Shown here: one piece after another, positions 1 to 24,905 of the stretch
How the letters are laid out: every line of letters begins with the position of its first letter
Position numbering within the stretch: position 1 is the first letter of the stretch
Assembly (NCBI GenBank): GCA_038496445.1
Contig: JALMLS010000207.1
Coordinates: 1-64,000, forward strand
DNA length: 64,000 nt
Direction of reading: 5' to 3'
Source: Trichosphaerium sp. ATCC 40318
Taxonomy: Eukaryota > Protista > Tubulinea
Notes under the pieces: generated by a model
Told to the model about the DNA's origin: nothing
Databases searched by the model: none
The model's input: the letters and a program-made list of their open reading frames with translations, nothing else
Made by a program: the position numbers and the translations under genes

Positions 1-2952
1 ATTCTTACTTCTAGTTGCTGATACTTTATTGTAGTTACCCTGCAAATGATTCGTTGCTGGTTGTATTATTAACACAAGCTATTGATACCCTTATTGATAC
101 GTTCTACGCATCTAATAGGGAGAAGGTGATGCGTGAGTACATCTACCAACCAAGTGGTTCTGTGGAGCGTGTTTTCTCTTATCAACAGCTTGTGAATGCT
201 GTTATGCAAGGAGAAAAGACCGTAAATGCCCCAGAAACCAATGAAACCATACAAATAGATGCCATCGCTCCTGAGATTGCACTGAGCCACTTGCCTCTTT
301 TGACTAATGTTGAGAGACAAGAGAAACTAGGCGAAGGGGCTTTCTCAACCGTGTACAGAGGGTTCACTAGCTCAGGGAGGAAGTTGCTGTTAAGGAGCTC
401 AAGAATAATACCGGTGAATCAGACTTCCGTGAGTTTACAAAAGAGGCGTGGGTGATGAGGTATGTTAACTTTTCTTTTTTGATCAAACACTAAGTCATAT
501 TCTTTAGTACCTTGGACCACGAGAATCTTGTAAAATTGCTTGGTATCGAGCTACAACCACTTTCCCTTATTACAGAGTATATTCCTGGCAACACACTTCA
601 TCATCATCTTCATGATGCTGACTTGAGTGACCAGCAATTTGATTGGGAAATACGTATTCGCATAGGTGTGCCTAACGGATGATTTATAATCAAATACTTT
701 TACTGACTTGATAATTTCTAGCAATTGATATTGCACGTGGTTTGCTGTACCTTGCAACACGCACACCACCAATTATTCATCGCGATCTAAGGTCCCTAAT
801 ATATTTGTACGTGAATGATAGATTCATTTGAGAAATGTATATTGACACAATTACAAGATTGCGTCATTAGATCCATCACAAGATGTTATTGCAAAGGTTG
901 GAGATTTTGGTTTAGCGCAGGTACGATCTTGGAAAAGAATATCATAACTCATCTAATGATAAACGTAGCATGCTGCACATGGTCTCAATGAAACATTGGC
1001 TACATTCCAATGGCTAGCACCTGAAGTATTGGATGATAATTCAAAGTATGATGAGCGTTCTGACATTTACAGTTTTGGTGTTGTACTATGGGAGTTAGCT
1101 TCAAGGTAATTATACTCGTTTAGTAGAGATTCATGACTAACCTTCTTATTTAAGGCAATTCCCATTCTCTGCAAACACAGAGTTTATTACACGTCGTACA
1201 GAGCCATTAACACCCCAGCAACTCTCAGACCCTGCGTTTGTTGAACAGCTTCGTTCTTCAGGCTGGACAATTCGTGATAACCTTGCTGTTAATGAAGAAT
1301 ACAAGACTCAAGAGATCAGACATGCCATTATTGAGGGGTTACGCCCTACAATACCGAAAAACTGCCTTCCAGAGGTAGCAAGGGTTATGGAACGTTGCTG
1401 GGCAAAAGATCCTTCAAAAAGACCTGAATACGCTACTATTATCAGAGTATTCAGTGATATGTTCAGCTATGAGAATAGCTTTGATGAACACAAAGACCCT
1501 ATTGATAGACGCAAGTCAGCTCACAACCTTGCCTTATCATGGAGTATGTCTCAGTTGTCACCAACTGTCAGTCCTCGCGTGTCAGCATCTCGCAGCTCAT
1601 CTTTTCTGGCACCTCCACTGACGACTCCAAACAACACAACATCTTCCGCTACTCTAAAACGACCAACACCACCTACAAGCAATCAAAACCTTGCAGCTAT
1701 AGCTAAGAAGATAGAGCCTACAGAACCTCCAAAACCAGTGCAACCTCAACCTCCGAAACAAGTTGAACCTCCGAAGAAGGTAGAGCCAGCACAGCCTCCA
1801 AAGCCAGTGCAACCTCCAAAACAGACAGAACCTTCGAAACTAGCAGAGTTAGTACACAGTGTAACTGGTAGCGCTGCATCGAAGTCAATATTCCTTATGG
1901 ATGGATATGTTTGGTGTGGTAGCGAGGATGGTCAAATTACTACATATAACTTTGGCGATCACGTATGTTTTGGTCAAATGTTACATGGTTCTAACCTTAT
2001 TTAGGCTCAACCTCCATGGGGTTTTCAAGGACATAACCAACCTATCAATGCAATGCTTAAGGTTGGCGAAAATGTGTGGACAGCAGCAGATTCACTTAAG
2101 TTATGGTCAATAATGGTGTGTTGATTGTAATAGTAAAATAATATTAACGACTTCTTTTAGGACCTTTCTAATGGTGGTACTGAACTGTCAGGGCATGCAA
2201 CTAAAGTTAATGTAATATTACGCGTTGCAAATGACTATATGTGGACAGCTGATTCCAGTGGTAATATTGTAATGTGGAGCTTGGTACGATAATTTTTTTT
2301 GGAAGCTTTTTTTTGGTTTGAAAAAGAGATTAACGTTTTCTTTTAGGATGGCAGTAAACTGCATCAAACTTCCATTTGTCAGGAATCTATAACCTGTATG
2401 TGCTTCGTAGAGGTAGGTGCAGGGTCTCAGTTTGTTTGGGTGGGAACAGAGCAAGGTAACATTCACGTTGTCAGCCTTGAAACTGCCCAGAGTACTGGTA
2501 CTTGGAATGCGCACGCTTCGCCTGTACACTCTATTATTTGTGTAAATAATGGGCAAGAAGTGTGGAGTAGTGGGGACACAAAGGTAGCCGCATGGCCTAC
2601 TAACGTACGAGCTTGTCCTTAGTAGACTCTTTTCTGATCTTTTTTTAGTGGCAGGGTGGCGAACAACCGACTTTTATACCTTGTAGCTCACCTGCTACTT
2701 GTTTAATTAGTATAGAAGACCGTGACCACGTATGGGTCGCTCTAGGTAACAGCGTGATACAGATTATGAATAAAAAGGTGCGAACTACAACCAAAAACTA
2801 TTGTAATGGTGGTTAACCTCTTAATGCTTTAGACAAAAAAAGTGGACTCCACGTGGAGTGGGTTTAATGGCCGCGTAAGAACGTTTGCTCTTGGCGGTGG
2901 CTGTGTATACAGTGGTAGTGGTAATTCAGTTTATTGTTGGCGCTACAAGTAG
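1..2952 (+). CDS. TKL-group (Roco/Pats1-like) protein kinase with Pro-rich linker and C-terminal WD40-like repeats; 5'-partial, multi-exon
   Basis: Spliced translation gives LGEGAFSTVYRG, VAVK, HRDLRSPNI, KVGDFG, WLAPE and SDIYSFG. A COR-tail-like IDAIAPEIAL precedes the kinase. A PKPVQP linker and VWCGSEDG/VWTA/VWVG/VWSS beta-propeller motifs follow. Two 1-nt homopolymer deletions (~376, ~795) must be corrected. Confidence 0.85.
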
Positions 2953-3152
2953 CCGCACAAATATAAAAACCACTCACTGTAATAAAAATGTACATTACGT
3001 AAGTCGCTTGTAATTGTTCTGGAAGTGCGCCTTATGGCGCTCGGGGGTATGATCAGCCGAGTGTGAACTGAAAGCTTCTTCTAGCGAAAACACAGTTTGT
3101 TACGACATTACGTTATTCCAACAATCCAAATAACTCAAGGCCTTGTACGCTC

Positions 3153-3804
3153 ATGTTCAATAAACGAAAAGGTTGGTTTGGGTAACATTCGAAGATACCG
3201 ACAAAGTCAAACGATTTCTCACTAAACCGTATAATTTTCTATTTACGTATTAGACAAGCGTAAGCAGTACTACAAGGCGTTTCATATCATAAATTATACA
3301 AATGGAACGACTTCAAAGCTCGTCTCAGGTAAAAACAAAAAAATACGCTACAGCGAAACTTTATCGGCGTTACGGCCACAAAATGGTTTTTATCGCTTTT
3401 TCCAACGCCAATTACGAAGTAAAAGATAAAACGTAGTTGTTTTCGAAAGAGTTATTACGAAATTACGAGTTTTTCGTACTGAATAGTATTTTAAAGGGCC
3501 CAGGTGGTGCGCAATCACGCATAGAAATAGCACAAGAAGAAAGTAATGACGGAGAACAAAAAATACAGAATACTCAAAACGCAACGAACCCAGCAGTTAG
3601 ACCGCGCCATCAGTGCGCGCCCAAGAAATTTTTTTGCTATTACCATCCCAGTGCGTCTTGATGCTGACTTTGTCTTTTTTTAGGTCAATAAAGTCTCGTA
3701 GTACACCTATAGCAAGGAATATACTCACAAAATTACCACACTCTTCTCGACATATGTTTATGAGTAGAGTTTTCCTCATAGATGGTGAAACACTTCTTGT
3801 GTAA
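3153..3804 (+). CDS. Small hypothetical spliced protein
   Basis: ATG at 3153, GT-AG bounded segments and short ORFs ending in TAA at 3804. No recognisable motif and the frame joins are uncertain. Confidence 0.3.
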
Positions 3805-4167
3805 CGTCATCGCTTTGTATAGAAAAAAAAAGAAAGCGGTACGCTTTGTGGCATCATCACCCTTTTCACTAAAAAATCGAAAATGGATATGACTTTTTTA
3901 CTTACTTTTTTACGTTTAGGTAAACTGGTACCATTGAAATACTTGCTTTTTTAAGGGTGAATTACAAAAAAACGACTTTCCGGAATATTCGTCGTACTAT
4001 CGCATTGACCTTTTTTTGTTTGTTATCCGTACTGTAATATAATATATAATAGAACGTAGTGTTAAAAAAACGCTTCTGGACCAAGTTTATTTTTTTTCAA
4101 TCTGAAAAATATTTGTCGAGCAACTTTCTGAGTTTTTTCTGATTTCAATGTGTCAAAATTGGAGTGT

Positions 4168-6228
4168 CTAACATTTCATTGCATTTGCGAAGGCTTCGAT
4201 ACCAGCTCCTTTTTTAAACTCGTAGTTACATTCTGCGAGTGCTGTTTCAATTGCTTCAACTGTTTTGGTCCTTAAAAACAAGTTAATCTTGTAAATGATG
4301 GTAACGACATACAAATGACCAAGTGCTGGTCTTGTTGCTGATATTGACATGTGACCAACTCTGAAGTATTCTGCTTTTATGTCTTTGTGTAGTCCTCCTG
4401 CAAGAATGACGCCCTGGGCTTTAATTTTTGGTAGAAGAGAACCAGCTAGAGATATGTTTAGTCGTAACACAATAATAGTAACTCTTCTAAACTTTCCATA
4501 CCATTTATGCCTTCAGGGAAGCGTACACAAGAAAGCGTATTTGCTTCCAAGTACGATTCGACTGGTACTGTACCTAATCCGAGAGCTTTTACAGCTACAT
4601 AACAATATTAGGACGAGTAAAAACAATTACATCCTTTCTAAGGCGTGTTGTGGTATACCTGATTTGAAAGCTGCAGCTGCCTACGCTCGGTAAATAAGAG
4701 AATGACAATTATGTTACATACCTTCTTGTGTTTGCTCCAGTTTGCTTCCATACCACCTTGACAAATAGGATTAATAATTCAGTAGTCTACTAATGGAGTT
4801 TGCTGATGATAATTGTACACATACCATCGGCGAGCATTTGGGTCAATGACACGTGCAACGCAGTGATGAGATTAACTGGAGGTGTAGCAAAATATGATGG
4901 TTTCAGTGACTCGTATGCTTTCATAATTGGAAGCCAGTTTTGCCAGTCAGCATAGTAATTAGGAACCTATTTTAGAAAACAAAATTACAACCAACAAAAA
5001 AAAATTAAAAAAATGCAAAAGGTACCTTTTTTACTCTTGCTCCGTGTGTAGCCTGTTGATAATATTAAAACGCTAAAAAGACGTTGGTTTATATGCAAGA
5101 CGTACTATGGCACGTTCTGATGCCATTGAAACAGATAGACCTTCGATTTAAGGTTAAAAGACGTTACGAAAGTTTTTAAGAAAACTTACCTGGAGGAACG
5201 CCAAGAGCTTTCTGGCTTGCAGTCATTACGTAATCGATACCCCATTCATCCATTCGCAACTCTTCTCCAGCTAATTAAATTTTAGAATTTCATGTATCTT
5301 AAAGTATGATTACCTGATGCACAGACGCCATCAACTATAATTAATGTATCTGGTGATACTTCTTTTACAACTGCAGCAACGGATTTCACATCTAAACTTT
5401 GTTAAGCGTGATTCACGTGTAAAGGTTTACCCGCTAGTACTCCAGTACTGGTATCAACATGGGTTATCGTAACGCCACGATACTTCTTACTCGATAGAGC
5501 TTTCTATTTACAGTGTTAGCGTTGTTTTTACCTAATGATCACTTGAACAATTAAAACAACTCGTACCTTTATATCTTCCATTGATGGAAAAGTTCCAGCA
5601 GGTCCTTGGACTATATCTGCATTTACATTGTATGATTTGAACCTAACGATACTTTGTTGGCACAAAACAACAAACGTGATTATACGTTCACGCACGTGTT
5701 CAAAAATCGGTCACCGAACTATTTTGTAACTGTCAGTACAACAAAAAAACCGCTTTAAAAAAGGTCACGTACGTATCCTGAGCTAATGATAAGAGCGTCG
5801 CTGTCCTTTTTGGAAAGAAAAAGTTACAAACACTTTTTGTAAAATAGCTAAATACATACTTGTTCAAACAAGTTAACTACAGTTGCATCCCATCCTAAGG
5901 TGCCTATTCGTTTATTAGACGATGTTTACTGAGTTTTTAATGTACCTGAGGCTGAAATTACAAACGGTTGCCCTTTTTTACAGCAAAATACCTTTCTATA
6001 CATCATAAGCTACAGTCAGCGTAAACTACCAGTACCTTAGGTTTATTAACACTTCAGAGAAGATTTTAATGAATACAGGCGATACGTGGCTCTCTGGGCG
6101 CCTTCCTAGGCGACTTGTCATTTGTTTTTTAGTGAAAATGACATAAACATACCTAGCGCTTCGAGAACTTGTGGATCGACCTCGATTGGTCCTGGTATCA
6201 TTAAAATAGGGCTTGAAGATGCGCTCAT
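4168..6228 (-). CDS. AGXT: Alanine-glyoxylate / serine-pyruvate aminotransferase (class V PLP enzyme), many micro-exons
   Basis: N-terminus [45 protein letters not shown]-lysine motif [18 protein letters not shown], and C-terminal GGL..YFRVGHM. Confidence 0.92.
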
Positions 6229-6939
6229 GATTGTTTAGAATGGATGAAAAGTCAAAAGATAGTTCAAAAGAAATAAAGACTTCGAAATTATTATTATTAT
6301 TTTATTTAACGTCAACGGTCTTCCTTTCGGAAAACCTAAGTTCTACTGGTCCACTAAGACACTACAAGAGGTAAACTCTGAACTTCTAGACGCAGCCAGG
6401 TTATTATGGGCGACTGATAAAAAAAAAAGGGGGAAAAAAACAAGAAAGAATACCAATATACAGAAAAGGAGACGAGGTGACCTAGAGTTTCTAAACAGTG
6501 TGAGACCATTATGCCAATAAACTTATAATAGTGAACCATGCTATAACGTAAGCTTCTAACCTAACTTCTCCATAAACTAACTTCAACTATAAAAGGAAAG
6601 CCCGGTAAGAATAGAAACAAATGTAAAAGAAAGAAAGAGGAGAAATTTCAAGATACTAAAGACCTAAGATATTTCTAATATTGTCATTAGCCAATGCAAA
6701 AACCCTCGGCCCTAGGTAAGCGCCCACCGATTTCTTATATGTGATATCTTTCTTACAACGTGATATATATCTTCTATATAATAATGCAATCAGTACCAAT
6801 TTCAAATATGGATTTTTAAGGAATTCCATATGATTTGGTAGACTTATTATTCATTGTTTTGTAGTTGAAAAATACTAGCCTTTTAGACATGATTTCCATA
6901 TGTAAATAAACAAAATTAGTTCTTAATTAATGTCAAATA

Positions 6940-7285
6940 GTAAGGTAGAATTCCAGATGAATACCAAGGTAGAATTCATATTGAAAAATAAGCGTGAATT
7001 CAGCCCCAAAAACAAGCTAGATTTAAGCTGGAAAATAAGGTAGAATTCAGACTGAAAACCAAGGTAGAATTCATATTTAAAAATAAGCGTGAATTCAGCC
7101 CCAAAAACAAGCTAGATTTAAGTTGGAAAATAAGGTAGAATTCAGACAAAAAAATAAGCGTGAATTCAGCCCAAAAACAAGCTAGATTTAAGCTGGAAAA
7201 TAAGGTAGAATTCAGACTGAAAAATAAGCGTGAATTCAGCGGAAAATAAGGTAGAATTCAGGCTGAAAATAAGTATGAATTAACC
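6940..7285. repeat. Subterminal array of the left end (AAGGTAGAATTC / AAGCGTGAATTCAGCC units)
   Basis: Repeated GAATTC-cored units. A longer unit (aagcgtgaattcagccccaaaaacaagctagatttaagctggaaaataaggtagaattcaga) occurs three times. Confidence 0.9.
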
Positions 7286-7376
7286 ACAAATAAAAATTCT
7301 ATTTATTACTAAATACTACAATTGCAAATCGTATTCCAAGCTGTCGTTCAAAAAACTTTCTAAGAAACAAACCAAT

Positions 7377-9472
7377 TCAAGGGTTTACAGGCAAGATGAA
7401 ATAATCTGAATGTTGCTCCAGTTGATCGTGCAAATAATCTACAGTCCATTTATTGTGTTGCACTAAAAAAATAAGCATCAGCATCAAACACTTGCAATTG
7501 CAAAACAACAACGCACAATGAGGATACTTGGAGCAGATGTCAATGCCAGTGTGGTGATGTATTTTCTGAGTCAAGTCTTTACGCTGTTTGTATGTGCCTG
7601 AAACTCTGATAGCGTTCTTGTCAGTATCACATGTTTTAATCCAATCATAGCAAACAGCTTTAAGGAGTATGAGCGCTGATGCGCCAGGAGATGCATTGCC
7701 CGAAAATGTGACCTGGTGAATGTCTTTTTGTTCATCTATAGTAAAGTGCTTCCTCACAGCTACACACGCATTATCCATCAAGTTCTTTCTGGCTAAAACA
7801 AAATAAGTTTATTGCAAAGCCAAAGACATTTAATCAGTACGTACCCACAAAAGAAAAGGAGCCTTTATAAAAAACCAACATGGACCAGTGCCACTGTGCA
7901 TTCGCATCGTACTTTTCCAAAGTAGGGTGTTCACACACACAAACACTGGTGTTAGTGTAACATAGAGGAACAACAAAGATTGAGGTACAGTCTTCATCCA
8001 AGTTGTGTTCATTCTGCAGCATAAAAGTGTCAGTGTCACCGCCTTCATTTAACACATGGAACGTACAAAGTTTCCCTGAAGAATAGGTGCTTTAGCTACT
8101 AGCGTGTATTGTGTATCGTCGTGCAAAAAAGCCAAAAGAGCATCCATGGTAAAGATGTAATCCTCGCAAAAGAGTGGCAAACAGTCCAACAGCTTCACTT
8201 TGTTCTCGCCAATTTCCACCTCTTCGTTAGCAAACAACTTGAACTACAAAAACAAAGGTGTTAGGTGTGGAATTCAAAAGTAGTGCAAGTACAACAGGAC
8301 TCTCCACAACACTGTCCTGGCTCACAACGCCTGGTTCTGGCGGGAGGCTAATGTGATCATTGAACTCAGGCAAAGAATACCCTTTATTACCAGCTTCCAT
8401 GCGCTTCCCCGCCGACTGCAAGTCCACCACTACTCCTGAACCATCTTCTAGCAATATAGCCTATTAGAATGGAGCGTTAGGTGCATATAAAGTAAAGAGC
8501 ATTAGGATACCGCTTCAGCCGCACTGTTCTGAGCAGTCAAAAGATCTGGGTGCCTGTAGTTAGGGTCATTCGCTATTCTTTCAAATCTTGGAAACTCGGT
8601 TATGAGTTTTGAATACTCGGCAGATACAGACTCATCCGTTACTTTTCCAGTTGCCCACTTGCCAAACTCCTTTCTTATTTTCTATACCAAGGTTATTCAA
8701 ATCAGTGTCAGTTTTGTACATGTTTGTAAAAGATCTGCATGGCGGCATAGTCTTGCTTGGGTTCATGGTCAGATGATATCAAAGCGTGGGCAATGTTCCA
8801 ACACTTGTGCACTAAACGTGTGTCAGTTGACCTAAAAAAAAAACAAAGAAAAAGAGTACCCAACAAATCCATATCTAGCAACGCTTCTTCTTTGACATTC
8901 TTGTTTTTGAACTCATAGTGTAACAGCTTGTTAATAGTTCTTGCCGATTTATGGAACACAGTCTTAGTTCTGAACGCATCTAGTTGTGCTAGATCCTTAA
9001 CACGAACTGGTCTATTCATATTACATAGCGCCAGCTCATTTATCTCTTTCTTCAAGCAGTCGTCATCCAGCATGGTCGTGTACGAGTGACAGTACCAAAG
9101 ATACCTTTTAATTACTGCTTTTTTGAACGGCTAAAATGGGTTACAAGATTAGTAAGAATTTTAAAAAAAAAGTAATCGTACCAAAGGAATTTCGTCTTGG
9201 TTTTTGTCCAACTGTTTAAGCAGTTGCTGTAGTTCGACTTTTAGCTTCTGTATCTCAGCGTTATGGGATTTGCTAGCCTTTTGTATTGACAATAGCATCG
9301 TTGTCTGTTCACTCATTCTATTCAACACCACTTGAATGCTGTCTAAAGGTTACAAGTTAAAAGCTTGCTTACAAGCACATTGTAACGTACCATACACCTG
9401 CTTTTGCTGAGCAGCCATCGTTTTGGCCATATGGTGGTACTCCAGTGTCTTTTTGGGCTTTGGTTGGGACAT
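7377..9472 (-). CDS. Transposon gene 2 (left arm): coiled coil plus degenerate Ulp1/C48 peptidase-like domain, multi-exon
   Basis: Spliced ORF MSQPKPKKTLEY...; KVKLLDCLPLFCEDYIFTMDALLAFL and IFVVPLC...WHWSMLVF resemble Ulp1 catalytic-domain motifs. The exact 3' end is uncertain. Confidence 0.6.
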
Positions 9473-10370
9473 GCTGCTCTTGTGGGGGTGATTCACGCGT
9501 TCTAAAAGGTTTGGTAGGCAAAGAGCAGTGTGAGCTCTAAGAAATTCTTAGAAGTTCTCAAAAAGAAAAAAAAAACACTGCTTGTGCTAAAGCCCAAACA
9601 ACAGCTAGTTCAAACTGGCATTACCTTTCCTATGAAACTCCGTGAAAACTCACGTGGATCTACTGTGGAATTACCAGAAAACTTGAAAGTGAAAAAAAAA
9701 GTAAGAACAATAAAATAATATGAAAATACATTATTTTATTGTTGGGATTTTTTTGAAGTTCTTCGCCTCTTTTGCGGTGGCTCTTCACTAGACTTGGGTG
9801 GATCTTTGTCAACGTCCATAAAATCCTCTGCGTCTTCTTCCGAGGTGCGTTTACGTTTCAGAGACCTTGTTAGCAAGAATTGTTGTCCCAGGTCAAATTC
9901 CCCACCAGCTTGCTCCAAATAGTGGCGTTGCACTATGTCACATGAGTACTTTGCACATTTGGACAAACACAACTGCAACAAAAAAAAAAAAAAAAAAAAA
10001 CTGTCGTACGTTTCTGTAGCACGGGCAAATACTCTTTGGGAAAACACATCATAGCCATTGCCATTTCTACATTTTGTTGGGTTTTAGAGTCCTTGAACGA
10101 TACCAGACCATCATGGACATAGGGTACCATAGCTTTAGCAACATTTAGTTTTAGTATTGGTAAACTCAACATTGCACTGGTCAAAGGCCCAGTAATAGGC
10201 GTTGTAACAGCTGTTCCATGTGCAGCTGATTGTACATCTTCTTCTTGTTGCTGTTGCACGTCCTTCTGATGAGTATCTGGTGTCTCAGCTTGTATCTGTT
10301 GGGTTGGTTTTTGTGTGGTAGGCAAACTGGGCGTTGTAGGAGCTGTTCCGTGTGCAGCTGATTGTACATA

Positions 10371-11493
10371 CAGTGGTAAATTTAAATCGGGGTTTTTAAG
10401 GGATTCCGTCTTAAAATCCTAAGGATTTATAAGCGGAAAATCTCTTCCTTTATTCCTATGGAATCCGGACGGAATTCCCTATGGAATCCAAATGGAATTC
10501 CCTATGGAATCCGGATGGAATTCCTTAAAGAATCTGGACGGAATTCCTTAAGGATTAACAACGGAATTCCCAATGGATTTTTTATGAAATTCCAAACAAA
10601 TTACAATATTTACATCAAGTTTTGTAGCACAAAATTCGTTTTATTTACCAATGATAATTTAGTTACGAAACGCAAATGTTCCACACGCTATCGTGTACAG
10701 GTCAAACTCATCAAATCTTTCCAATCTTTGGCCAAGAATTTTATCGCACCTGGTATTGCAATCATAAATTGCTAATAACGCATTCGTAGAAGCTAAAATA
10801 AGAAAAGAGTAGTTTTTTGATAAATTAAATGGAAATAACCTTCAAAAACAACGTACTTGAGATTAATGCCCTAAATGCGTGTCCTAGTGGTGTGTAAAGG
10901 CCTTTGAAATGCTTTACAAGCCTCAAAACGGATTAGTAAGCGATATAGAAATATCACTGCTAACGAAAATCACCAAAATACTTATCTCGCTTACTTTTTG
11001 ATTAAACGTCTTTTCGTTGTATCCATTGGTTTTCTACACCAATAAAAGGGTGACGATGTGGTTTACTAAAAAAAAACTTGGTTAGGTAAGGCTTTGATAG
11101 TTGTCGAAATAATGAATAATTTTGAATTTTCACCAAAAATATTTTTCAAAGGAATTCTCACAAAATCCATACGGAATTTCGTTAAAAATCCCTATGGAAT
11201 TCCATTAAAAATCCCAAGGGAATTCCCTACAAAATCCATATGGAATTCCGTTAAAAATCCCTTCAATTATTCCCGTTGATATGCTGCCAACATTTGCCAA
11301 TATTGTTGTTTGGGATTTTTTTACAAATCCCAAGGAATTCCTTATTTTAATGGAATATAGCAGAAATCCCATCAAAAATCCAATCGAAAATTCAGATTGC
11401 TTAGGGATTTTTTCCACAATTCCGCTAAAATCCTTAAAAAACACGGAATTTAACAGGATTCCAGAGGAAAATCCCGTTTTTAATTTACTACTG
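10371..11493. mobile_element. Nested non-autonomous TIR element 1 (~1.12 kb)
   Basis: Imperfect TIRs CAGTGGTAAATTTAAATCGGG / CAGTAGTAAATTAAAAACGGG with dense GGAATTCC/GGATTCC subterminal repeats. It is inserted in the repeat GATTGTACATCTTCTTC, leaving ATA/ATC flanks (AT duplicated plus one base). Confidence 0.88.
10659..11026 (-). CDS. Spliced mini-ORF (~76 aa) or captured gene fragment inside nested element 1
   Basis: Removing two introns (gtaagc..tactaat..gag and gtacgt..ttttag) gives MDTTKRRLIKKLVKHFKGLYTPLGHAFRALISTSTNALLAIYDCNTRCDKILGQRLERFDEFDLYTIACGTFAFRN*, followed by AATAAA. Confidence 0.5.
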
Positions 11494-12107
11494 ATCTTCT
11501 TCTTGTTGCTGTTGCACGTCCTTCTGATGAGTATCTGGTGTCTCAGCTTGTATCTGTTGGGTTGGTTTTTGTGTGGTAGGCAAACCTGACGTTGTAGGAG
11601 CTGTTCCGTGTGCAGTTGATTGTACATCTTCTTCTTGTTGCACGTTACCCTGAGCAAGATTTATCTCTATGGTCGGTTCTTGCGAAGCCGTTAAATCAGG
11701 CGTTGTAGGAGCTGCACCATGTGCAGCTGATTGTACATCTTCTTCTTGTTGTTGCACGCTATCCTGAGCATCTGTATCAAGATTTATCTCTCGGGTTGGT
11801 TCTCGTGAAACTGTTGTAGCAGCTGGTGAAGATGGCACATTTGTTGTCCTACGATGTTGTTCTGGATTTTGAGCTCTGTCTTCATCTTGTTCTTTTTGTT
11901 GGTTTTCTTGTGTTGGAGCAGGTGCATTTGTAGGAGTGGTAGCATTGTTACCTTTAGTGGTGGCAGCGGCAATGGCTTGAGCAGCGGCACGAGCTTCAGC
12001 AGCAGCAGCAGCGACACGAGCTTCGGCAGCGGCAATGGCTTGAGCAGCGGCACGAGCTTCAGCAGCGGCAGCAGCAGCAACATGGCGAGAATTGACATCT
12101 GTTGGTG

Positions 12108-12410
12108 GAGGATCAGCAGCGGCATCTGGTTGAGGGCTGGGCTCATGTGGTGGAAGATTAGTAGTGGCATCTGGTTGAGGGTTGGGTTCATGAGGAGGAT
12201 TAGCAGTGGCATCTGGTTGAGGGTTGGGTTCATGAGGAGGATTAGCAGTGGCATCTGGTTGAGGGTTGGGTTCATGAGGAGGATTAGCAGTGGCATCTGG
12301 TTGAGGGTTGGGCTCATGAGGAGGATTAGCAGTGGCATCTGGTTGAGGGTTGGGTTCATGAAGAGGATTAGCAGCGGCATCTGGTTGAGGATTGGGTTCA
12401 TGTGGTGGAC
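12108..12410 (-). repeat. 42-bp coding tandem repeat, ~7 copies (NPPHEPNPQPDATA)
   Basis: Unit ggattagcagtggcatctggttgagggttgggttcatgagga is visible directly and in ORF 11488-12684. Confidence 0.95.
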
Positions 12411-12794
12411 CATGTGCATCACGCTGACGACGAAGACGATGACGATGATTAGGAGGGGGTTGGTTATTGTCGATAATAGTGAAACGAAAGTCAGGATTGC
12501 TCAGCCTAAAACGTGCAAGAGCAGCATTGAATGAAGCATTCATATGCCGAGTATCACGAGACCCATCAGGCATAATCCGTTGCTTGTGAATAACATCTAA
12601 ATCATCAGCCATCATATGTTTCTCATCGCTATCAGGTGTACTATAGTCCTCTGAACTGTCGGAACTGTCGTCACTGCCTCCCAAATGATAGGTGGGTCAA
12701 CATAGCCTGAAGGCATGTCTCCATCCCACTGTGGGTATTCATCAATGTGTTTTGTTGACTCTACCATCCTTTTAATGGTGGCTGCCATGTGATA

Positions 12795-13945
12795 CCTGTT
12801 GATAAAATTAAAACGCTAAAAAGACGTTGATTTATGCAAGACGTACTATGGCACGTTCTGATGCCATTGAAACAGATAGACCTTCGATTAAGGTAAAAGA
12901 CGTTACGAAAGTTTTTAAGAAAACTTACTGGAGGAACGCCAAGAGCTTTCTGGCTTGCAGTCATTACGTAATCGATACCCATTCATCCATTCGCAACTCT
13001 TCTCCAGCTAATTAAATTTTAGAAATTCATGTATCTTAAGTTGATTACCTGATGCACAGACCCATCAACTATAATTAATGTATCTGGTGATACTTCTTTA
13101 CAACTGCAGCAACGATTTCACATCTAAACTTTGTTAAGCGTGATTCACGTGTAAAGGTTTACCCGCTAGTACTCCAGTACTGGTATCAACATGGGTTATC
13201 GTAACGCCACGATACTTCTTACTCGATAGAGCTTTCTATTTACAGTGTTTGCGTTGTTTTTTACCTAATGATCACTTGAACAATTAAAACAACTCGTACC
13301 TTTATATCTTCCATTGATGAAAAGTTCCAGCAGGTCCTTGACTATATCTGCATTTACATTGTATGATTTGAACTAACGATACTTTTTGCACAAAACAACA
13401 AACTGATTATACGTTTCACGCACGTGTTCAAAAATCGTCACCGAACTATTTTGTAACTGTCATACAACAAAAAAAAACGCTTTAAAAAGGTCACGTACGT
13501 ATCCTGAGCTAATGATAAGAGCGTCGCTGTCCTTTTGGAAAGAAAAAGTTACAAACACTTTTTGTAAAATAGCTAAATACATACTTGTTCAAACAATTAA
13601 CTACAGTTGCATCCCATCCTAAGGTGCCTATTCGTTTATTAGACGATGTTTACTGAGTTTTTTAATGTACCTGAGGCTGAAATTACAAACGTTTGCCCTT
13701 TTTTACAGCAAAATACCTTCTATACATCATAAGCTACAGTCAGCGTAAACAACCAGTACCTAGGTTTATTAACAACTTCAGAGAAGATTTTAATGAATAC
13801 AGCGATACGTGGCTCTCTGGCGCCTTCCTAGGCGACTTGTCATTTGTTTTTAGTGAAAATGACATAAACATACCTAGCGCTTCGAGAACTTGTGGATCGA
13901 CCTCGATTCCTGTATCATTAAAATAGGGCTTGAAGATGCGCTCAT
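12795..13945 (-). pseudogene. Truncated, frameshifted 5' copy of the aminotransferase gene
   Basis: Retains the ATG at 13945 and [12 protein letters not shown], but has many indels and lacks all exons corresponding to 4168-5051. Confidence 0.75.
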
Positions 13946-14648
13946 GATTGTTTAGAATGGATGAAAAGTCAAAAATAGTCAAAGAAATAAAGACTTCGAA
14001 ATTATTATTATATTTTATTAACGTCAACGGTCTTCCTTTCGGAAAACCTAAGTTCTACTGTCCACTAAGACACTACAAGAGGTAAACTCTGAACTTCTAG
14101 ACGCAGCCAGGTTATTATGGCACTGATAAAAAAAAAGGGGAAAAAACAAGAAAGATACAATATACAGAAAAGAGACAGGTGACCTAGAGTTTCAAACAGT
14201 GTGAGACCATTATGCCATAAACTTATAATAGTGAACCATGCTAAACGTAAGCTTCTAACCTAACTTCTCCATACTAACTTCAACTATAAAAAGGAAAGCC
14301 CGTAAGAATAGAAACAAATGTAAAAGAAAGAAAGAGGAGAAATTTCAAGATACTAAAGACCTAAGATATTTCTAATATTGTCATTAGCCAATGCAAAAAC
14401 CCTCGGCCCTAGGTAACGCCCACCGATTTCTTATATGTGAAATCTTTCTTACAACGTGAAATAATATCTTCTATATAATAAAGCAATCAGTACCAATTTC
14501 AAATATGGATTTTTAAGGAATTCCATATGATTTGGTAGACTTATTATTCATTGTTTTGTAGTTGAAAAATACTAGCCTTTTAGACATGATTTCCATATGT
14601 AAATAAACAAAATTAGTTCTTATTAATTCAAATATAAGGTAGAATTCC
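12795..14648 (+). repeat. Direct copy of 5052-6954 (AGT 5' half, its upstream region, and the first 164 bp of the element)
   Basis: Colinear near-identity with 5052-6954, differing mostly by 1-nt deletions. A second CAGTACC end begins at 14488. Confidence 0.93.
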
Positions 14649-15436
14649 GTATGGATTTTGTGAGAATTCCTTTGAAAAATATTTTGTGAAAATTCAAAAT
14701 TATTCATTATTTCGACAACTATCAAAGCCTTACCTAACCAAGTTTTTTTTTAGTAAACCACATCGTCACCCTTTTATTGGTGTAGAAAACCAATGGATAC
14801 AACGAAAAGACGTTTAATCAAAAAGTAAGCGAGATAAGTATTTTGTGATTTTCGTTAGCAGTGATATTTCTATATCGCTTACTAATCCGTTTTGAGGCTT
14901 GTAAGCATTTCAAAGGCCTTTACACACCACTAGGACACGCATTTAGGGCATTAATCTCAAGTACGTTGTTTTTGAAGGTTATTTCCATTAATTTATCAAA
15001 AACTACTCTTTTCTTATTTTAGCTTCTACGAATGCGTTATTAGCAATTTATGATTGCAATACCAGGTGCGATAAAATTCTTGGCCAAAGATTGGAAAGAT
15101 TTGATGAGTTTGACCTTACACGATAGCGTGTGAACATTGCGTTTCGTAACTAAATTATCATTGGTAAATAAAACGAATTTTGTGCTACAAAACTTGATGT
15201 AAATATTGTAATTTTTTGGAATTTCATAAAAAATCCATTGGAATTCCGTTGTTAATCCTTAAGGAATTCCGTCCAGATTCTTTAAGGAATTCCATCCGGA
15301 TCCATAGGGAATTCCATTGGATTCCATAGGGAATTCCGTCCGGATTCCATAGGAATAAAGGAAGAGATTTTCCGCTTATAAATCCTTAGGATTTTAAGAC
15401 GGAATCCTTAAAAACCCCGATTTAAATTTACCACTG
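14643..15436. mobile_element. Partial inverted copy of nested element 1
   Basis: Reverse complement of 10371-11178, ending ...AAATTTACCACTG at the same insertion junction. Confidence 0.9.
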
Positions 15437-15437
15437 T

Positions 15438-16064
15438 ATGTACAATCAGCTGCACACGAACAGCTCCTACAACGCCCAGTTTGCCTACCACACAAAACCA
15501 ACCCAACAGATACAAGCTGAGACACCAGATACTCATCAGAAGGACGTGCAACAGCAACAAGAAGAAGATGTACAATCAGCTGCACATGAACAGCTGTTAC
15601 AACGCCTATTACTAGTTTGACCAGTGCAATGTTGAGTTTACCAATACAAAAACTAGATGTTGATAAAGCTATGGTACCCTATGTCCATGATGGTCTGGTA
15701 TCGTTCAAGGACTCTAAAACCCAACAAAATGTAGAAATGGCAATGGCTATGATGTGTTTTCCCAAAGAGTATTTGCCCATGCTACAGAAACGTACGACAG
15801 TTTTTTTTTTTTTTTTTTTTGTTGCAGTTGTGTTTGTCCAAATGTGCAAAGTACTCATGTGACATAGTGCAACGCCGCTATTTGGAGCAAGCTGGTGGGG
15901 AATTTGACCTGGGACAACAATTCTTGCTAACGAGGTCTCTGAAACGTAAACGCACCTCGGAAGAAGACGCAGAGGATTTTATGGACGTTGACAAAGATCC
16001 ACCCAAGTCTAGTGAAGAGCCACCGCAAAAGAGGCGAAGAACTTCAAAAAAATCCCAACAATAA
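15438..16064 (+). pseudogene. Transposon gene 1, 3' fragment (right arm)
   Basis: Inverted copy of 9736-10370 with the same C-terminus (PPQKRRRTSKKSQQ*). Confidence 0.8.
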
Positions 16065-16327
16065 AATAATGTATTTTCATATTATTTTATTGTTCTTACT
16101 TTTTTTTTCACTTTCAAGTTTTCTGGTAATTCCACAGTAGATCCACGTGAGTTTTCACGGAGTTTCATAGGAAAGGTAATGCCAGTTTGAACTAGCTGTT
16201 GTTTGGGCTTTAGCACAAGCAGTGTTTTTTTTTTCTTTTTGAGAACTTCTAAGAATTTCTTAGAGCTCACACTGCTCTTTGCCTACCAAACGTTTTAGAA
16301 CGCGTGAATCACCCCCACAAGAGCAGC

Positions 16328-18423
16328 ATGTCCCAACCAAAGCCCAAGAAGACACTGGAGTACCAACATATGGCCAAAACGATGGCTGCTCAGCAAAAGC
16401 AGGTGTATGGTACGTTACAATGTGCTTGTAAGCAAGCTTTTAACTTGTAACCTTTAGACAGCATTCAAGTGGTGTTGAATAGAATGAGTGAACAGACGAC
16501 GATGCTATTGTCAATACAAAAGGCTAGCAAATCCCATAATGCTGAGATACAGAAGCTAAAAGTCGAACTACAGCAACTGCTTAAACAGTTGGACAAAAAC
16601 CAAGACGAAATTCCTTTGGTACGATTACTTTTTTTTTCAAAATTCTTACTAATCTTGTAACCCATTTTAGCCGTTCAAAAAAGCAGTAATTAAAAGGTAT
16701 CTTTGGTACTGTCACTCGTACACGACCATGCTGGATGACCACTGCTTGAAGAAAGAGATAAATGAGCTGGCGCTGTGTAATATGAATAGACCAGTTCGTG
16801 TTAAGGATCTAGCACAACTAGATGTGTTCAGAACTAAGACTGTGTTCCATAAATCGGCAAGAACTATTAACAAGCTGTTACACTATGAGTTCAAAAACAA
16901 GAATGTCAAAGAAGAAGCGTTGCTAGATATGGATTTGTTGGGTACTCTTTTTCTTTGTTTTTTTTTAGGTCAACTGACACACGTTTAGTGCACAAGTGTT
17001 GGAACATTGCCCACGCTTTGATATCATCTGACCATGAACCCAAGCAAGACTATGCCGCCATGCAGATCTTTTACAAACATGTACAAAACTGACACTGATT
17101 TGAATAACCTTGGTATAGAAAATAAGAAAGGAGTTTGGCAAGTGGGCAACTGGAAAAGTAACGGATGAGTCTGTATCTGCCGAGTATTCAAAACTCATAA
17201 CCGAGTTTCCAAGATTTGAAAGAATAGCGAATGACCCTAACTACAGGCACCCAGATCTTTTGACTGCTCAGAACAGTGCGGCTGAAGCGGTATCCTAATG
17301 CTCTTTACATTATATGCACCTAACGCTCCATTCTAATAGGCTATATTGCTAGAAGATGGTTCAGGAGTAGTGGTGGACTTGCAGTCAGCGGGGTCGCGCA
17401 TGGAAGCTGGTAATAAAGGGTATTCTTTGCCTGGGTTCAATGATCACATTAGCCTCCCGCCAGAACCAGGCGTTGTGAGCCAGGACAGTGTTGTGGAGAG
17501 TCCTGTTGTACTTGCACTACTTTTGAATTCCACACCTAACGCCTTTGTTTTTGTAGTTCAAGTTGTTTGCTAACGAAGAGGTGGAAATTGGCAGGAACAA
17601 AGTGAAGCTGTTGGACTGTTTGCCACTCTTTTGCGAGGATTACATCTTTACCATGGATGCTCTTTTGGCTTTTTTGCACAACGATACACAATACACGCTA
17701 GTAGCTAAAGCACCTATTCTTCAGGGAAACTTTGTACGTTCCATGTGTTAAATGAAGGCGGTGACACTGACACTTTTATGCTGCAGAATGAACACAACTT
17801 GGATGAAGACTGTACCTCAATCTTTGTTGTTCCTCTATGCTACACTAACACCAGTGTTTGTGTTTGTGAACACCCTACTTTGGAAAAGTACGATGCGAAT
17901 GCACAGTGGCACTGGTCCATGTTGGTTTTTTATAAAGGCTCCTTTTCTTTTGTGGGTACGTACTGATTAAATGTCTTTGGCTTTGCAATAAACTTATTTT
18001 GTTTTAGCCAGAAAGAACTTGATGGATAATGCGTGTGTAGCTGTGAGGAAGCACTTTACTATAGATGAACAAAAAGACATTCACCAGGTCACATTTTCGG
18101 GCAATGCATCTCCTGGCGCATCAGCGCTCATACTCCTTAAAGCTGTTTGCTATGATTGGATTAAAACATGTGATACTGACAAGAACGCTATCAGAGTTTC
18201 AGGCACATACAAACAGCGTAAAGACTTGACTCAGAAAATACATCACCACACTGGCATTGACATCTGCTCCAAGTATCCTCATTGTGCGTTGTTGTTTTGC
18301 AATTGCAAGTGTTTGATGCTGATGCTTATTTTTTTAGTGCAACACAATAAATGGACTGTAGATTATTTGCACGATCAACTGGAGCAACATTCAGATTATT
18401 TCATCTTGCCTGTAAACCCTTGA
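16328..18423 (+). CDS. Transposon gene 2 (right arm): coiled coil plus degenerate Ulp1-like domain
   Basis: Inverted copy of 7377-9472 with a few substitutions and canonical introns. The stop could be ~18348 if gtatcc..tttag is spliced. Confidence 0.6.
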
Positions 18424-18514
18424 ATTGGTTTGTTTCTTAGAAAGTTTTTTGAACGACAGCTTGGAATACGATTTGCAATTGTAGTATTTAGTAATAAATA
18501 GAATTTTTATTTGT

Positions 18515-19790
18515 GGTTAATTCATACTTATTTTCAGCCTGAATTTTACCTTATTTTCCGCTGAATTCACACTTATTTTTCAGTCTGAATTCTACCTTAT
18601 TTTCCAGCTTAAATCTAGCTTGTTTTTGGGCTGAATTCACACTTATTTTTCTGTCTGAATTCTACCTTATTTTCCAACTTAAATCTAGCTTGTTTTTGGG
18701 CTGAATTCACGCTTATTTTTAAATATGAATTCTACCTTCAGGGCTGAAACTAAATAAGGCTTTTTTTGCAAAAGCCTTTTTTTTGCCACCAAATACAGCC
18801 TTATTTTTCACCAAATTGCCTTGTTTTTGCCAAAAAAAATGGGCAAATATGAGGCATTGCCTTGTAATTTTGGGCTTTGAAGCCTCATATTTGGGCCAAA
18901 TAGCAAGCAACTGGTTCACTAATTAGCCTTAAAATAGCCTGCATTGTTGGTCCAATAATGCCTCATTTTTTGTGCAACAATAAGGCATTTTTGCCCTCAA
19001 TTTTTGGGCATAACCCAGGCACCATATACTCATAAAACAAGGCTTTATATAGGCATACAATAGTGATTCATTTATTAAAGTACAGTACACAAAACACAAA
19101 AAACTTCAATGTCCTCCATGTGAAAAAAAACCTTTAGTTAAAAAAAAAAATTAACAAATTATTGGTATAATTTTCGCGGACTGGAAAAATGGTTTAAAGT
19201 ACCTATACTCCTGTTGTAGGTGTATTTGGGTGCTGCGGTTCGAATGGCGGTGGTTTCGTTAGAATCCATAAAATACTAAGAGCGTGGTGACGGCGTCTAT
19301 ATAAAACGTCAGTAGTAAATGAAAAAAAATGTTTAGAAAGTGTTGGTGTGGTGGAGACTTACCTTAAACCAATGTATCCTTAATGTACAATGTGTACACA
19401 ACCAATGCCTAATTGGTGCCTATAAATTTAAGGCTGGCAATGCATAAAAAAACTAGGGCAGGCATTGCCTAAAAAAAACAAGGCATTGCAACAATTAAGG
19501 CATTGCCCAACAAAACCTTATTTCAATGCCTGATTTTTGCCTTTTCTGCCATTGCCTTTGCAAAATCAGGCATTGCCATTTTTGCATGCCTGATTTTTGC
19601 CATCAATGCCTGATTTTAAAAAAATGCCTTCATATTTAAGGCAAAGCCTTGTTTAGTTTCAGCCCTGTTGGTTTTCAGTCTGAATTCTACCTTATTTTCC
19701 AGCTTAAATCTAGCTTGTTTTTGGGGCTGAATTCACGCTTATTTTCAATATGAATTCTACCTTGGTATTCATCTGGAATTCTACCTTACT
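18515..19790. repeat. Subterminal GAATTC array of the right end, split by nested element 2
   Basis: Reverse complement of 6940-7285, interrupted at 18739-19667. Confidence 0.88.
18739..19667. mobile_element. Nested non-autonomous TIR element 2 (929 bp), 2-bp TSD TT
   Basis: 25-bp TIR CAGGGCTGAAACTAAA(T/C)AAGGCTTT. The empty site is visible in the left arm (ctacc-TT-ggtttt), which fixes the TT duplication. Many subterminal GCCT/AGGC motifs. Confidence 0.93.
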
Positions 19791-19973
19791 ATTTGACATT
19801 AATTAAGAACTAATTTTGTTTATTTACATATGGAAATCATGTCTAAAAGGCTAGTACTTTTCAACTACAAAACAATGAATAATAAGTCTACCAAATCATA
19901 TGGAATTCCTTAAAAATCCATATTTGAAATTGGTACTGATGTTCCGTTTTTACCATTGATGCTACCTGTTCCA

Positions 19974-21289
19974 TTAATTGTTTGAATTGGAAAGAATGTC
20001 CTCTTCACCGTTGATAACATTCTGAGTTGCTAGTTTCAAATACCTTTAGGAACAGAAAAAGGAAGTTGTATTTCTCTGACAATTCCTTTCTGTTTGACTC
20101 AGAACTCTTCTCTGTACGTTTTATATGTTTGAGTTTTCCGCTTTTTTGGGCATGAAACAAAAAACATCGCAGCTACATATGCAACTCAAATCACGTTAAG
20201 TAAACTATTTTTATTATACACTTTACAGTTTAAAGACATCCTTTTGATCAATCAGCGAAGAAACCTTCACCTATAGCAATAATTCCTCTCAACCTTTGGT
20301 TTTCTGCTAGGGCTGTATTGAGGCGCTCGACCATATCCAAGCACATGCCACAGTACCCACACATTTCTTGTTGTGTAGTGACTGGATTATCGTTGGGACA
20401 TCGACTTAAATTCAACACAATACTCATAGAGGGTACATTGCTCTATGAGTTCACAATATTTCATTTGAGAGCACCTGAAATGAGTTGTCACTTTGTCCCT
20501 CATTGTTACAACCGAATAAAACAAGACCCTGAACGTAGTACTGGTACCCTTAATTTCAACGTGTTGTATTTTTAGAACAAAAAAAATTAATTGTATACTT
20601 ACTACGTACTGCAGGCTTTGAAAAAGTCTGTGCAGACAATGAAAACCCATTACCAGAAATGGTTATTCCTGACAGCCCATCACCCTTTGATTCTTTTATA
20701 CCCGTATGTCACGACAATGCAATGGATATAGACTTTGTCGACCCACCTTCGCCTGCCACAGAAGAGTTTCAATACTTAAAAAAAGGATGAGTTGATTTTC
20801 ACGTGGTTCACTGTTTTTTGATTTATACGTACTGGAATGGTTGATCTAATACAGAACTTTAGAAGGTTCTTACTTATTGACTCTGTATTTTTACCACAAG
20901 TCCATAATCGTTCGAAATCTATTTGGTCGATGTATACAAACCAACCTTTTTGTCTTCTTCCACTGTTGAATTGAACCTAGTAGATTCGTAAATTGTAGAA
21001 GACAAATAAAGTAAAACTATGTACTTACTTGGCATTTGGAGGCGTGGCGTATATTTTCTGTGCCATTTGTAAAAATGTTACAAATATTGTTGGCTTCTTT
21101 GCTTTGATGTTGCGCTCCATTGTTGTTGGTGTTGGGTTTTAACAAATGTGCAGATGGTCATAACACTTCTGTTCAATGAATTTGTTCCGAACGCTTAGTT
21201 TCGAACATTGTATTGTTTAATAAGGTACAACATATAACGGAGAAGTAAATGTAAATACAAAAAATATAATTATTGTCGACCATCGACAT
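19974..21289 (-). CDS. Hypothetical multi-exon protein (contains CGYCGMC)
   Basis: GT-AG bounded exons, e.g. QVQFNSGRRQKGWFVYIDQIDFERLWTCG and QQEMCGYCGMCLDMVERLNTALAEN. Both ends are uncertain. Confidence 0.5.
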
Positions 21290-21640: not shown

Positions 21641-22767
21641 TTAAGGAGATAGAACAGCTCTCTGCCAAACATCCAGTTCAGTGGTATCACGTGTGTATGA
21701 AGTGACATCATCTAAACCATTCTTGGCGCCAGCCCAGAATTCAAATCTTGTAGGTTCAATACGGAATGAGCCATAGTTCTCTGGGCGAGAAATGCCTAAA
21801 TGAAGCGTTAAGTTTTTCTTTTTGAAAGTGTTGTGTTTTGAACGTACTCGCTACTTTCTTTAACTCAACGTGTTTCTTGTTTATTTTATTTGCAACCTCT
21901 CCAATTGATTCTACTTCTTGACCAGGAACACTTGTAAGAGCAACTACAAACAACGTTAAGCGGGTAACTAAAAATCATTGAAAAAAAAAAGAACGCTGTC
22001 ATTGAAACAACTTCATATTAACGACGTTCCAGTAGTGAACGACGATAAAATATCCCTTACTGTCTATAGCTCAAATGGGGCAACGTTGATTATGCTTTAA
22101 AACACGTACGTAGTCGCTGTTGATGAGTTTTTGTGAAAAAGGCGCTATCACTTTCCTTATCTCCTGCCTCAACAATAGATCCTTCAATCCTGACAGATTG
22201 GTCACCTTTTGCCCAGTAGAACACCATGGCGCCTTTTGGATTTTCTAAAGCGTTGTGTAAGCCAAAAAAAAACGAAGTTGAATAAAGCTTATGTGCAGTC
22301 ATGGTATGCTGTAGAGAATGCACAACGTGGGTACCTTTAATTTCCTTTGCTTTACGGCTTTCTTTGTGTGTTTGGAACTGAAATCCACGCATGTCCCACT
22401 GTGTGAGTTTTACTACTCTGTTTGATGGTACACCATCAGGTGTCGCAGTTGCTAGTGTACATTTGCTAACTTCTACGTTTCCTTCCAATCGGACCGCTTC
22501 GTCATACCACTGTTTAAACACATTGAAAGGTGAAGATTGAGGCTTGCTACCAGAGAAATCATCGCCGTGAATGCGTTTAGCGGCAATACGCGTCAATGGC
22601 GCCTTTTTTGTTCTAATTCAGCGTCAATTGTTGTATTCAAGCATTGTAAAGAGGTAAAAGGCAGGCCCTGGCCTTTAGACTTTTGCGTACCTTTTGCTCT
22701 CTGTACGTCCTGTCATTGATGTATTGCGTGCGCATGTCGCATATCTAGAGAATTTTGAAACAAGCAT
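21641..22767 (-). CDS. PNPO: Pyridoxamine/pyridoxine 5'-phosphate oxidase
   Basis: PFNVFKQWYDEA, TLATATPDGVPSNRVVKL, SRKAKEI, NPKGAMVFYW, QSVRIEG, RFEFW and W...LSP* motifs. The N-terminus resembles a mitochondrial presequence. Confidence 0.88.
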
Positions 22768-23084: not shown

Positions 23085-24846
23085 ATGTTTAACGCTTGCC
23101 CTCGTGCTTTGATAGCGTTTAGAAGTCTTAGACATGTGACTCGCAACGTACGAATTGTATCTAAACGGAATATTCTAATATTTACGCGGTATAGCGTGTA
23201 GTGGGTAGGCGTTATGTGTCAAGGGAAGCCGTTAGAAACCTGAACCGCGAAGATTACGTTGGGTACTCCTAATTTCAATAAAACTGTTCTTACACGTCTA
23301 GCAATGACACTTTATACGGAAAAAAGCCAATGAGCCCAAAGTACTCGTACACTAAAAAAACAGCTGGTACGTTAAATAAAACAGCCCAGAATATAATCCA
23401 CGCGCTGGGGGCTCGCTAACATTTTTTTTTATAGCCTACCATCGCAACGCGTACTTTGAAACGATGAAACAAGGTGTAGATCCACTTAACGCGTTTATAC
23501 AGCATATGCCGCATATTCGAGACTACACATTAGCCAAGGATAGCCTTTTTGAACTAAAACGCGCTAAACGCATATCAGGCGGTAGAAGATCACGTCGCGC
23601 TTATACAATAATACTGTCATTATGTCCAACAGGATCTGATGCGGAATCTTGGTACAGCGAGATGAAACAACGGAATATACGTCCAGACACATACGTATTC
23701 AACCAATTAATCAGATCTGTCGGCGGATTGACGAATAACGAGATTTTGCCTGGACGTGTCAAGAGATGCTTAGAACTCTTCAACGAGATGCATAAAATAC
23801 GTATAGAGCCTAATGTATTAACATTTGATGCATTAATACGTGTTCACTCAAAATACGAGCTTTATGGTACTGCATTTAAGTTATACCAAACAATGATTAA
23901 GACATACGGAATCAAACCAGAGGTTGTTATTTATCAAGGTTTGTTCCATATGTGTGGAAAAGCAAAAGAACCTAAAAAAGCTGTACAGCTTTTCCATGAG
24001 ATGCGTGCACAGGATATATATCCAGATCAAGTTACATATAATATACTTATACAGTGTCTTGGAGAAACAGAGAAGAATTTAGCACATGCTATTTTTAAAC
24101 AGATGGTCAAAGATGAAAAAGTCCGTGTTGATAGTGTAACTCTTAATCATATTCTACGTATTGAAGACGATGTTGGTAATGCTTTAAAGATACTAGATGA
24201 TATGAACACAGGCGTATATGATGGTATTAAGCCTGATAGTGTATCGTACACTATGGTATTACAGTTGATGATAAAAAACAGTAGAATAGCTGAAGCTTTA
24301 GATCTTTTTCACAAAGCGAAGATTCGTATCATCAACGAGAAGACTGTTGTTCTTGATTCTGTTACATGGCATATTGTGATTAAAGCATGTATAAATGATA
24401 ACGAATTAGAGATGGCACGAGACTTATTCTATGAGCAGAAGGAACATATAAAACCGATAGCAAAGACTTTTGCTTCTCTGATTTCTGCTTTTTCAAAGGA
24501 TGATCCATCAACTGGTTTGAACTTCTTTGAAGAATATAAACTACTATATGCGCGTGGTAGACGTGATGTAGTGGTATATGAAGCAGTTGCAAGGTTACAC
24601 ATAGAACAAAAGAAATGGAGATACGCTTGTGACACAATGAGAAGCATGAGAGAAAGAAGTATGCTTCCTCCTATTCCATTGTACTTGGACCTTATTAAAG
24701 GATTGGAAGAGGCAGGTTTGTTTGTTGAACAAGATGAAATGCAAAAACAGCTAGATAGTGTTCGTGAAGGAAAGTTTAAAAAGGAACAAACCGTTTTTGA
24801 GAAGACATTACCTGCAAGCAATAACAAAAGAAACAATACAAAATAA
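23085..24846 (+). CDS. Pentatricopeptide repeat (PPR) protein, probably mitochondrial
   Basis: Repeated 35-aa motifs (IRPDTYVFNQLI, IEPNVLTFDALI, IYPDQVTYNILI, IKPDSVSYTMVL). Arg-rich N-terminal exon MFNACPRALIAFRSLRH. Confidence 0.9.
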
Positions 24847-24905
24847 AAAAAAAAATTCAAAACCTTGTAACCAACGTTTTTATTCGTCTTACAGTACATG
24901 TAGTC

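Follow-up and report, generated by a model that had tools for sequence, protein, structure and literature searches.

The question raised by this locus is whether a 13-kb structure with gene-carrying mirror arms is a single transposon. The structure lies at positions 6791-19938 of the window, i.e., the whole stretch of 64,000 nt that was analyzed (positions 1 to 64,000 of contig JALMLS010000207.1, assembly GCA_038496445.1) from the amoebozoan Trichosphaerium sp. ATCC 40318. The original prediction had read it as one transposon complex with inverted arms of about 4.4 kb and possibly as an undescribed protist family with gene-bearing giant arms. The mirror arms exist in the assembly, but most likely do not form one element. 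Both arms are the left end of a multi-gene CMC/EnSpm-like transposon of about 17.9 kb, here called the parent element. The apparent giant mirror-arm transposon is most likely an assembly error rather than a real feature, and a protist family with gene-bearing giant arms most likely does not exist.

Self-comparison of the window showed that 6789-7062 mirrors 19940-19668 with 99.3% identity and that 7061-11178 mirrors 18738-14643 with 98.7% identity, a likeness far beyond chance. As predicted, CAGT stands at 6791 and ACTG ends at 19938, with AT adjoining both. The substitutions said to distinguish the arms (GKRM/GSRM, PEFN/PGFN and DDDC/DDHC, as well as LKLNVA/QKLDVD at sites 10138-10153) were confirmed, as was the restriction of a 929-bp insertion to the right arm (18739-19667). 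A simple read fold-back of the whole arm was ruled out by 31 substitutions and by this insertion. The self-comparison also revealed a direct repeat, the flank at 5052-6990 being present again at 12795-14681 with 95.4% identity, and this is the copy of the flank that had been predicted ahead of 14488. Two features had been overlooked: 10371-11493 is a separate nested element, and 12789-15616 is rich in errors (Table 1).

The sequences on either side of the structure belong to two separate loci, called flank F (left) and flank G (right). Contig C107 matched window 1-6790 with 99.7% identity and 0 indels in 5052-6790, and the match stopped exactly at the insertion point. The empty sites on C107, C226 and C171 continue with ATAAATACGG, and not with the window sequence from 19939 onwards. 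Since the empty site has this other continuation, the AT dinucleotides at the two ends reflect two insertions beside AT, and not one duplicated target. AT as a target-site duplication of the whole unit, as originally proposed, was therefore rejected.

The parent element was pieced together from overlapping contigs. In the proposed genome search, performed with the terminal 170 bp, full-length matches outside the window came from C412 and C560 only. Both track the left arm over 3.58 kb and, with 10371-11493 missing, continue through window 11494-12788. C412 overlaps C448 over 10.5 kb with 99.99% identity. C448 and C165 are alike until C448:13731 and C165:14347, respectively, where each closes with this terminus in reverse complement. 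The resulting length of the parent is about 17,919 bp. Its terminal inverted repeat (TIR) is perfect and only 22 bp long, and the right ends on C448 and C165 have just these 22 bp in common with the left end. A search for the terminus pattern yielded nine sites, namely three in the window, one each on C412, C560, C448 and C165, and both ends of a 277-bp element on C286. The three window termini are all left ends.

The two ends of one parent copy are never found together on a contig, and the four left and two right flanks are unpaired, so that six or more insertions are probable. The left end of the C412 copy lies in the pol region of a long terminal repeat (LTR) retrotransposon, and the right end of the C448 copy lies in a small-GTPase-like frame. 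The four other contigs with long parts of the parent (C412, C448, C165 and C560) each start or stop inside the element, which the assembler evidently failed to span there. The parent copies are 0.2-0.9% apart, and this near-identity points to a young family. At C560:1139-1140, a copy without 1.8 kb of the parent (C412 15821-17621) was observed. The 277-bp element (C286:17717-17993; L007:4718-4994) carries the TIR of the parent with CAA on either side, possibly hinting at a 3-bp duplication.

These copies bear directly on the reading of the structure as one foldback element of 13 kb, whose gene-bearing TIRs would span 4.4 kb and whose target duplication would be AT. The original prediction had itself named other genomic copies with only short TIRs as the observation that would speak against it, and this is what was found: the other copies are 17.9 kb long and have TIRs of 22 bp only. 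Moreover, the flanks come from two loci and the centre consists of host flank DNA without a transposase. Thus, in spite of the CAGT...ACTG ends, the AT on either side and the 98.7% identity of the arms, this reading is almost certainly wrong. Foldback-type elements such as Galileo, FB/FARE and the long-TIR Mutator types have true long TIRs and one target duplication, and they recur in the genome. The likeness of the window structure to them is superficial and limited to the kilobase inverted arms. It is single, it is derived from a short-TIR family, its flanks from two loci do not make up one target site with a duplication, and its long arms are not shared by other copies.

Similarly, 14488-19938 had been described as a two-ended unit, and it would then be a natural 5.4-kb element that was tandemly duplicated together with its flank. 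It does carry the 22-bp TIR at both ends and is preceded by a copy of flank F. However, it is bounded by two left ends and has no right end, no second copy of it exists in the genome, its first 1.1 kb is error-rich, and its outer flank is another locus, so that the right flank does not continue the left one. A tandem flipped duplication is thus extremely unlikely.

The patch that joins the two arms (12789-15616) stands out by its errors. Over 12795-15616, the indel rate was 18-33 per kb, nearly all of it single-base deletions, compared with 0 per kb in flank F, 1.8 in the left arm and 1.0 in the rest of the right arm, each relative to independent copies. Deletions account for 70 of about 80 indels in the patch, and the error profile returns to background near 15616. 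C107 and C414 share no deletion allele with the F copy, which retains the window F alleles at 6149, 6357 and 6567. An explanation of the 95% identity between the flank copies by old divergence was rejected, since the differences are nearly all private 1-bp deletions. The inverted part of the patch contains the nested element at 10371-11493 (MITE1), which resembles miniature inverted-repeat transposable elements (MITEs). Compared with MITE1 of the left arm, it has 0 substitutions in 794 bp where 7 were expected at the arm rate (P ~7e-4); no other MITE1 copy exceeds 98% identity. These comparisons show that the patch was copied wholly from the left locus. A frameshifting change at window 12682-12684, 106 bp before the first junction (J1), is missing from three other copies; the error-rich piece may start there.

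Past 15616, 23 sites differ from the left arm where the right arm equals C412 and C560, and 7 sites are private. The right arm is thus a mosaic, in which an error-rich piece from the left locus is followed by the polished left end of another copy. The substitutions by which a fold-back had originally been dismissed stem from this second copy. Among the models offered at that time, a merge by the assembler comes closest to the evidence; what was merged would be two different loci via a chimeric piece of low quality, and not two orientations. In its strict form, i.e., two haplotypes carrying one insertion in opposite orientations, a merge could draw on the redundancy of the assembly, in which C107, C414 and C85 repeat the left flank at ~99%, and on the succession of a duplicated flank and element sequence. 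However, a flipped insertion would set the right end beside flank F, and both F copies precede a left end. Flank G, in addition, is not the continuation of the empty site, and the strict form is very improbable.

It is highly probable that the structure is an assembly artefact that combines a chimera from multiple displacement amplification (MDA) with a repeat-mediated misjoin of the left ends of two copies. For the Trichosphaerium sp. assembly, DNA was amplified with REPLI-g (MDA) before sequencing, and Nanopore and PacBio reads, Canu and three Pilon polishing rounds were used (PMC10521059). MDA chimeras are direct and inverted, their parts usually lie <10 kb apart, and their overlaps are 5-8 nt (PMC9984789). 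Long-read MDA assemblies were found to contain thousands of misassemblies (10.64898/2026.06.11.730069). The patch resembles the phi29 chimeras described (PMC9984789): the library was amplified by MDA with phi29, one direct jump (7.7 kb) and one inverted jump (4.2 kb) both remain below 10 kb, the overlap at the second junction (J2) is short, and the structure is confined to a single contig. At J2 (~14648), the sequence jumps onto the opposite strand with a 6-nt overlap, AATTCC, with MITE1. The patch differs from these chimeras in that a second copy, and not the fold-back itself, supplies the long arm, and in that the chimera was deduced from the assembly and not seen in reads.

During phi29 amplification, a molecule from the copy at locus F would switch template twice. 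The first switch would take it out of the element interior and return it to its own flank (J1). By the second, it would pass from GAATTC repeats near the TIR to MITE1 on the opposite strand (J2). The thinly covered chimeric molecule would end in outward-pointing element sequence, so that, as proposed here, the assembler would exit via a second copy, extending the chimera through the ~99% identical left end of that copy and out into flank G. The outcome would mimic one element with 4.4-kb inverted arms.

J1 and J2 were found on no other contig of the assembly. In spite of three Pilon rounds, errors lie 12-40 bp from J1 and <=30 bp from J2. A genuine junction should draw unique Illumina reads and be polished, and the errors at J1 and J2 would argue otherwise. 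Similar marks are present elsewhere in the assembly: on contig C9, 24 deletions fall within 400 bp at the corresponding element end, and mirror-placed pairs of matches with equal scores on C445 (centre ~3759) and C441 (centre ~7306) suggest further fold-backs.

A real and very recent rearrangement in some nuclei would have a geometry identical to that of a chimera. By microhomology-mediated template switching or abortive transposition, loci F and G would have been fused head to head: flank, left end and MITE1 would have been copied from F and attached to the left end of the locus-G copy. The short junction overlaps, the youth of the family with its low divergence between copies, and the multinucleate organism are all compatible with such an event. 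It leaves unexplained, however, why, after the polishing, the deletion-rich patch is coextensive with what was copied and extends up to both unique junctions, and it has to be set against the MDA amplification of the DNA and the absence of the junctions from other contigs. A real rearrangement is thus unlikely, and it is equally doubtful that the left ends of two copies at different loci were really fused by a template switch linking GAATTC repeats of a CMC element to its nested MITE. If they were, a short-TIR family could yield multi-kb gene-bearing inverted arms in one step, rearranging an amoeba chromosome.

Some points weigh against an assembly artefact. The chimera is read from the assembled sequence itself. 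A real recent duplication could stay unpolished inside, with short reads preferring the better copy. At sites 9210 and 9565, in the clean region, the arms agree with each other against C412 and C560, so that the arms may be sister copies. Finally, the match pairs on C445 and C441 were judged by match coordinates alone.

The 929-bp insertion (MITE2) and MITE1 are ordinary multicopy MITE-like elements. MITE1 has 13 other copies in the genome with 91-98% identity and is missing from the matching site in C412, C560 and C165. In the window, it interrupts a low-complexity gene, and it makes up 0.8 kb of the 4.4-kb arm. MITE2 is present in at least 40 copies with 96-99% identity, and copies are flanked by the 2-bp duplications AA, TT and TT. 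Inside MITE1, window 10632-11074 gave 69-73% matches at >20 other places, and its minus strand has a short frame that looks coding; the segment is probably a gene remnant from a related autonomous family. The MITE1 end was also found at C5:908767 and C2:5192, and a transposase at C5:919314.

Of the two genes claimed for each arm, one stands as a probable multi-exon gene, while the second is only the 3' tail of the low-complexity gene. From 9547 to 7380, all neighbouring open frames could be separated by frame-keeping GT-AG introns of ~50 nt, and the open frames of the arm would probably form one multi-exon orphan gene. Exon by exon, this gene had no significant Pfam or PDB match, and one of its exons was found only in the four element copies. 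Exon 7837-8091 contains an HWSMLV motif reminiscent of ULP1-type proteases, a resemblance that no test supported. A single-sequence fold of one arm exon had a predicted local distance difference test score (pLDDT) of 41 and was not used. The low-complexity gene, which contributes just its 3' tail to each arm, corresponds in C412 to a single long open frame (560-589 aa). The parent also carries an intronless open reading frame (ORF) of 277 aa (L003:4051-4881, minus strand; C412 ~24050-24880). The start of this ORF is F-box-like, and it matches MORN_2 weakly (E 0.005); no homologue of this F-box/MORN-like ORF was found. F-box-like and MORN_2-type domains were reported among giant-virus-derived genes (PMC10521059).

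The window contains none of the transposase of the parent. A spliced gene at the right end of the parent (C448/C165) shows the motifs HDNFT, CRVC, CPFH, HxxxH and a later E, which were read by eye (L013:1180-2700), and it has 25 relatives in the genome. In the ESM Atlas, its look-alikes were Transposase_21 and RAG1 clusters (0.92-0.96). Pfam scans of the transposase exons and a PF02992 search remained below threshold, and Transposase_21 gave zero matches over the cut-off in the whole genome. A phmmer search with a transposase exon against 1.8 billion proteins returned one true-looking match of 76 aa and one repeat artefact. A literature search on Dictyostelium DDT elements gave nothing.

The CMCT clade is defined by CA..TG ends plus C(2)C and H(3-4)H motifs (PMC12730594), and its members make target-site duplications of 2-5 bp. 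With its CAGT...ACTG termini and 22-bp TIR, the parent has 5'-CA..TG-3' ends and can be read as a CMC-like element, placed at the level of the clade by its ends and by-eye motifs. Like the CMC/CMCT members (EnSpm/CACTA, Mirage, Chapaev, Plavaka, ESTA and Lanisha; PMC12730594), it combines CA..TG termini and short TIRs with subterminal repeats and several additional genes. Its spliced transposase has apparent C(2)C and H(3-4)H motifs, and small related elements make 2-bp (MITE2) or possibly 3-bp (C286) duplications. The parent differs from these members by ending in CAGT and not in CACT/CAC, by the lack of a Pfam match at threshold, and by its orphan cargo genes. The predicted CACTA/CMC affinity thus holds for the parent, given its ends, subterminal repeats and the CMC-type motifs on C448/C165, but not for EnSpm/CACTA in the strict sense, which has CAC termini whereas those of the parent are CAG. 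With a spliced DDE transposase at its right end, 22-bp TIRs and subterminal repeats, the parent would move by ordinary cut-and-paste, as known for the family.

With regard to flank G, the paralogous contigs C346, C164 and C15 stop matching at 20126 and carry 20395-20775 in the opposite orientation; further breakpoints, real or chimeric, lie at 20126-20775. Beyond it, the window contains host genes for a pyridoxamine 5'-phosphate oxidase (22093-22617), a PPR protein (23464-24846) and a MORN_2-repeat protein (29010-29666). A minus-strand ORF at 35278-36130 consists of P/T/V-rich, mucin-like tandem repeats that are 15-bp-based.

Table 1. Features of the mirror-arm structure and its flanks (window coordinates).
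Feature	Position	Strand	Description
Flank F, host DNA, polished	5052..6790		Left-copy insertion after ...GCAAT
Left end of parent	6791..7281	+	22-bp TIR at 6791-6812; subterminal array of 23-24-bp GAATTC-containing repeats
Probable single multi-exon orphan cargo gene	7380..9547	-	Open frames, possible introns; mirrored at ~16253-18420 (+)
Low-complexity gene of parent	9700..12788 (lower limit approximate)	-	Q/P/A-rich, internally repeated; split by MITE1, cut at J1
MITE1, nested, non-autonomous	10371..11493		CAGTGG...CTACTG ends; AT duplicated plus one extra A
Junction J1	12789..12794		Direct jump 7.7 kb back from inside element to flank F; ~4-nt imperfect overlap
Error-rich copy of flank F	12795..14487	+	48 deletions, 7 insertions and 10 substitutions in 1.7 kb
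Error-rich third copy of left end	14488..14648	+	161 bp; ends at inverted junction J2
Error-rich inverted MITE1 copy plus ~180 bp of element	14643..15616	-	13 deletions relative to left-arm MITE1
Polished left end of a different parent copy	15617..19938	-	~30 substitutions from left arm, 10 from C412
MITE2, 929 bp	18739..19667		CAGGG...CCCTG ends; TT duplicated
Flank G, another locus	19939..20775		Matches C346, C164 and C15

For Trichosphaerium, it follows that any mirror structure or local duplication in this MDA-based assembly needs a check of error profile and empty site before it is read biologically. What remains as real is a young amoebozoan family of 17.9-kb, multi-gene, CMC-like elements that end in CAG and carry orphan cargo.

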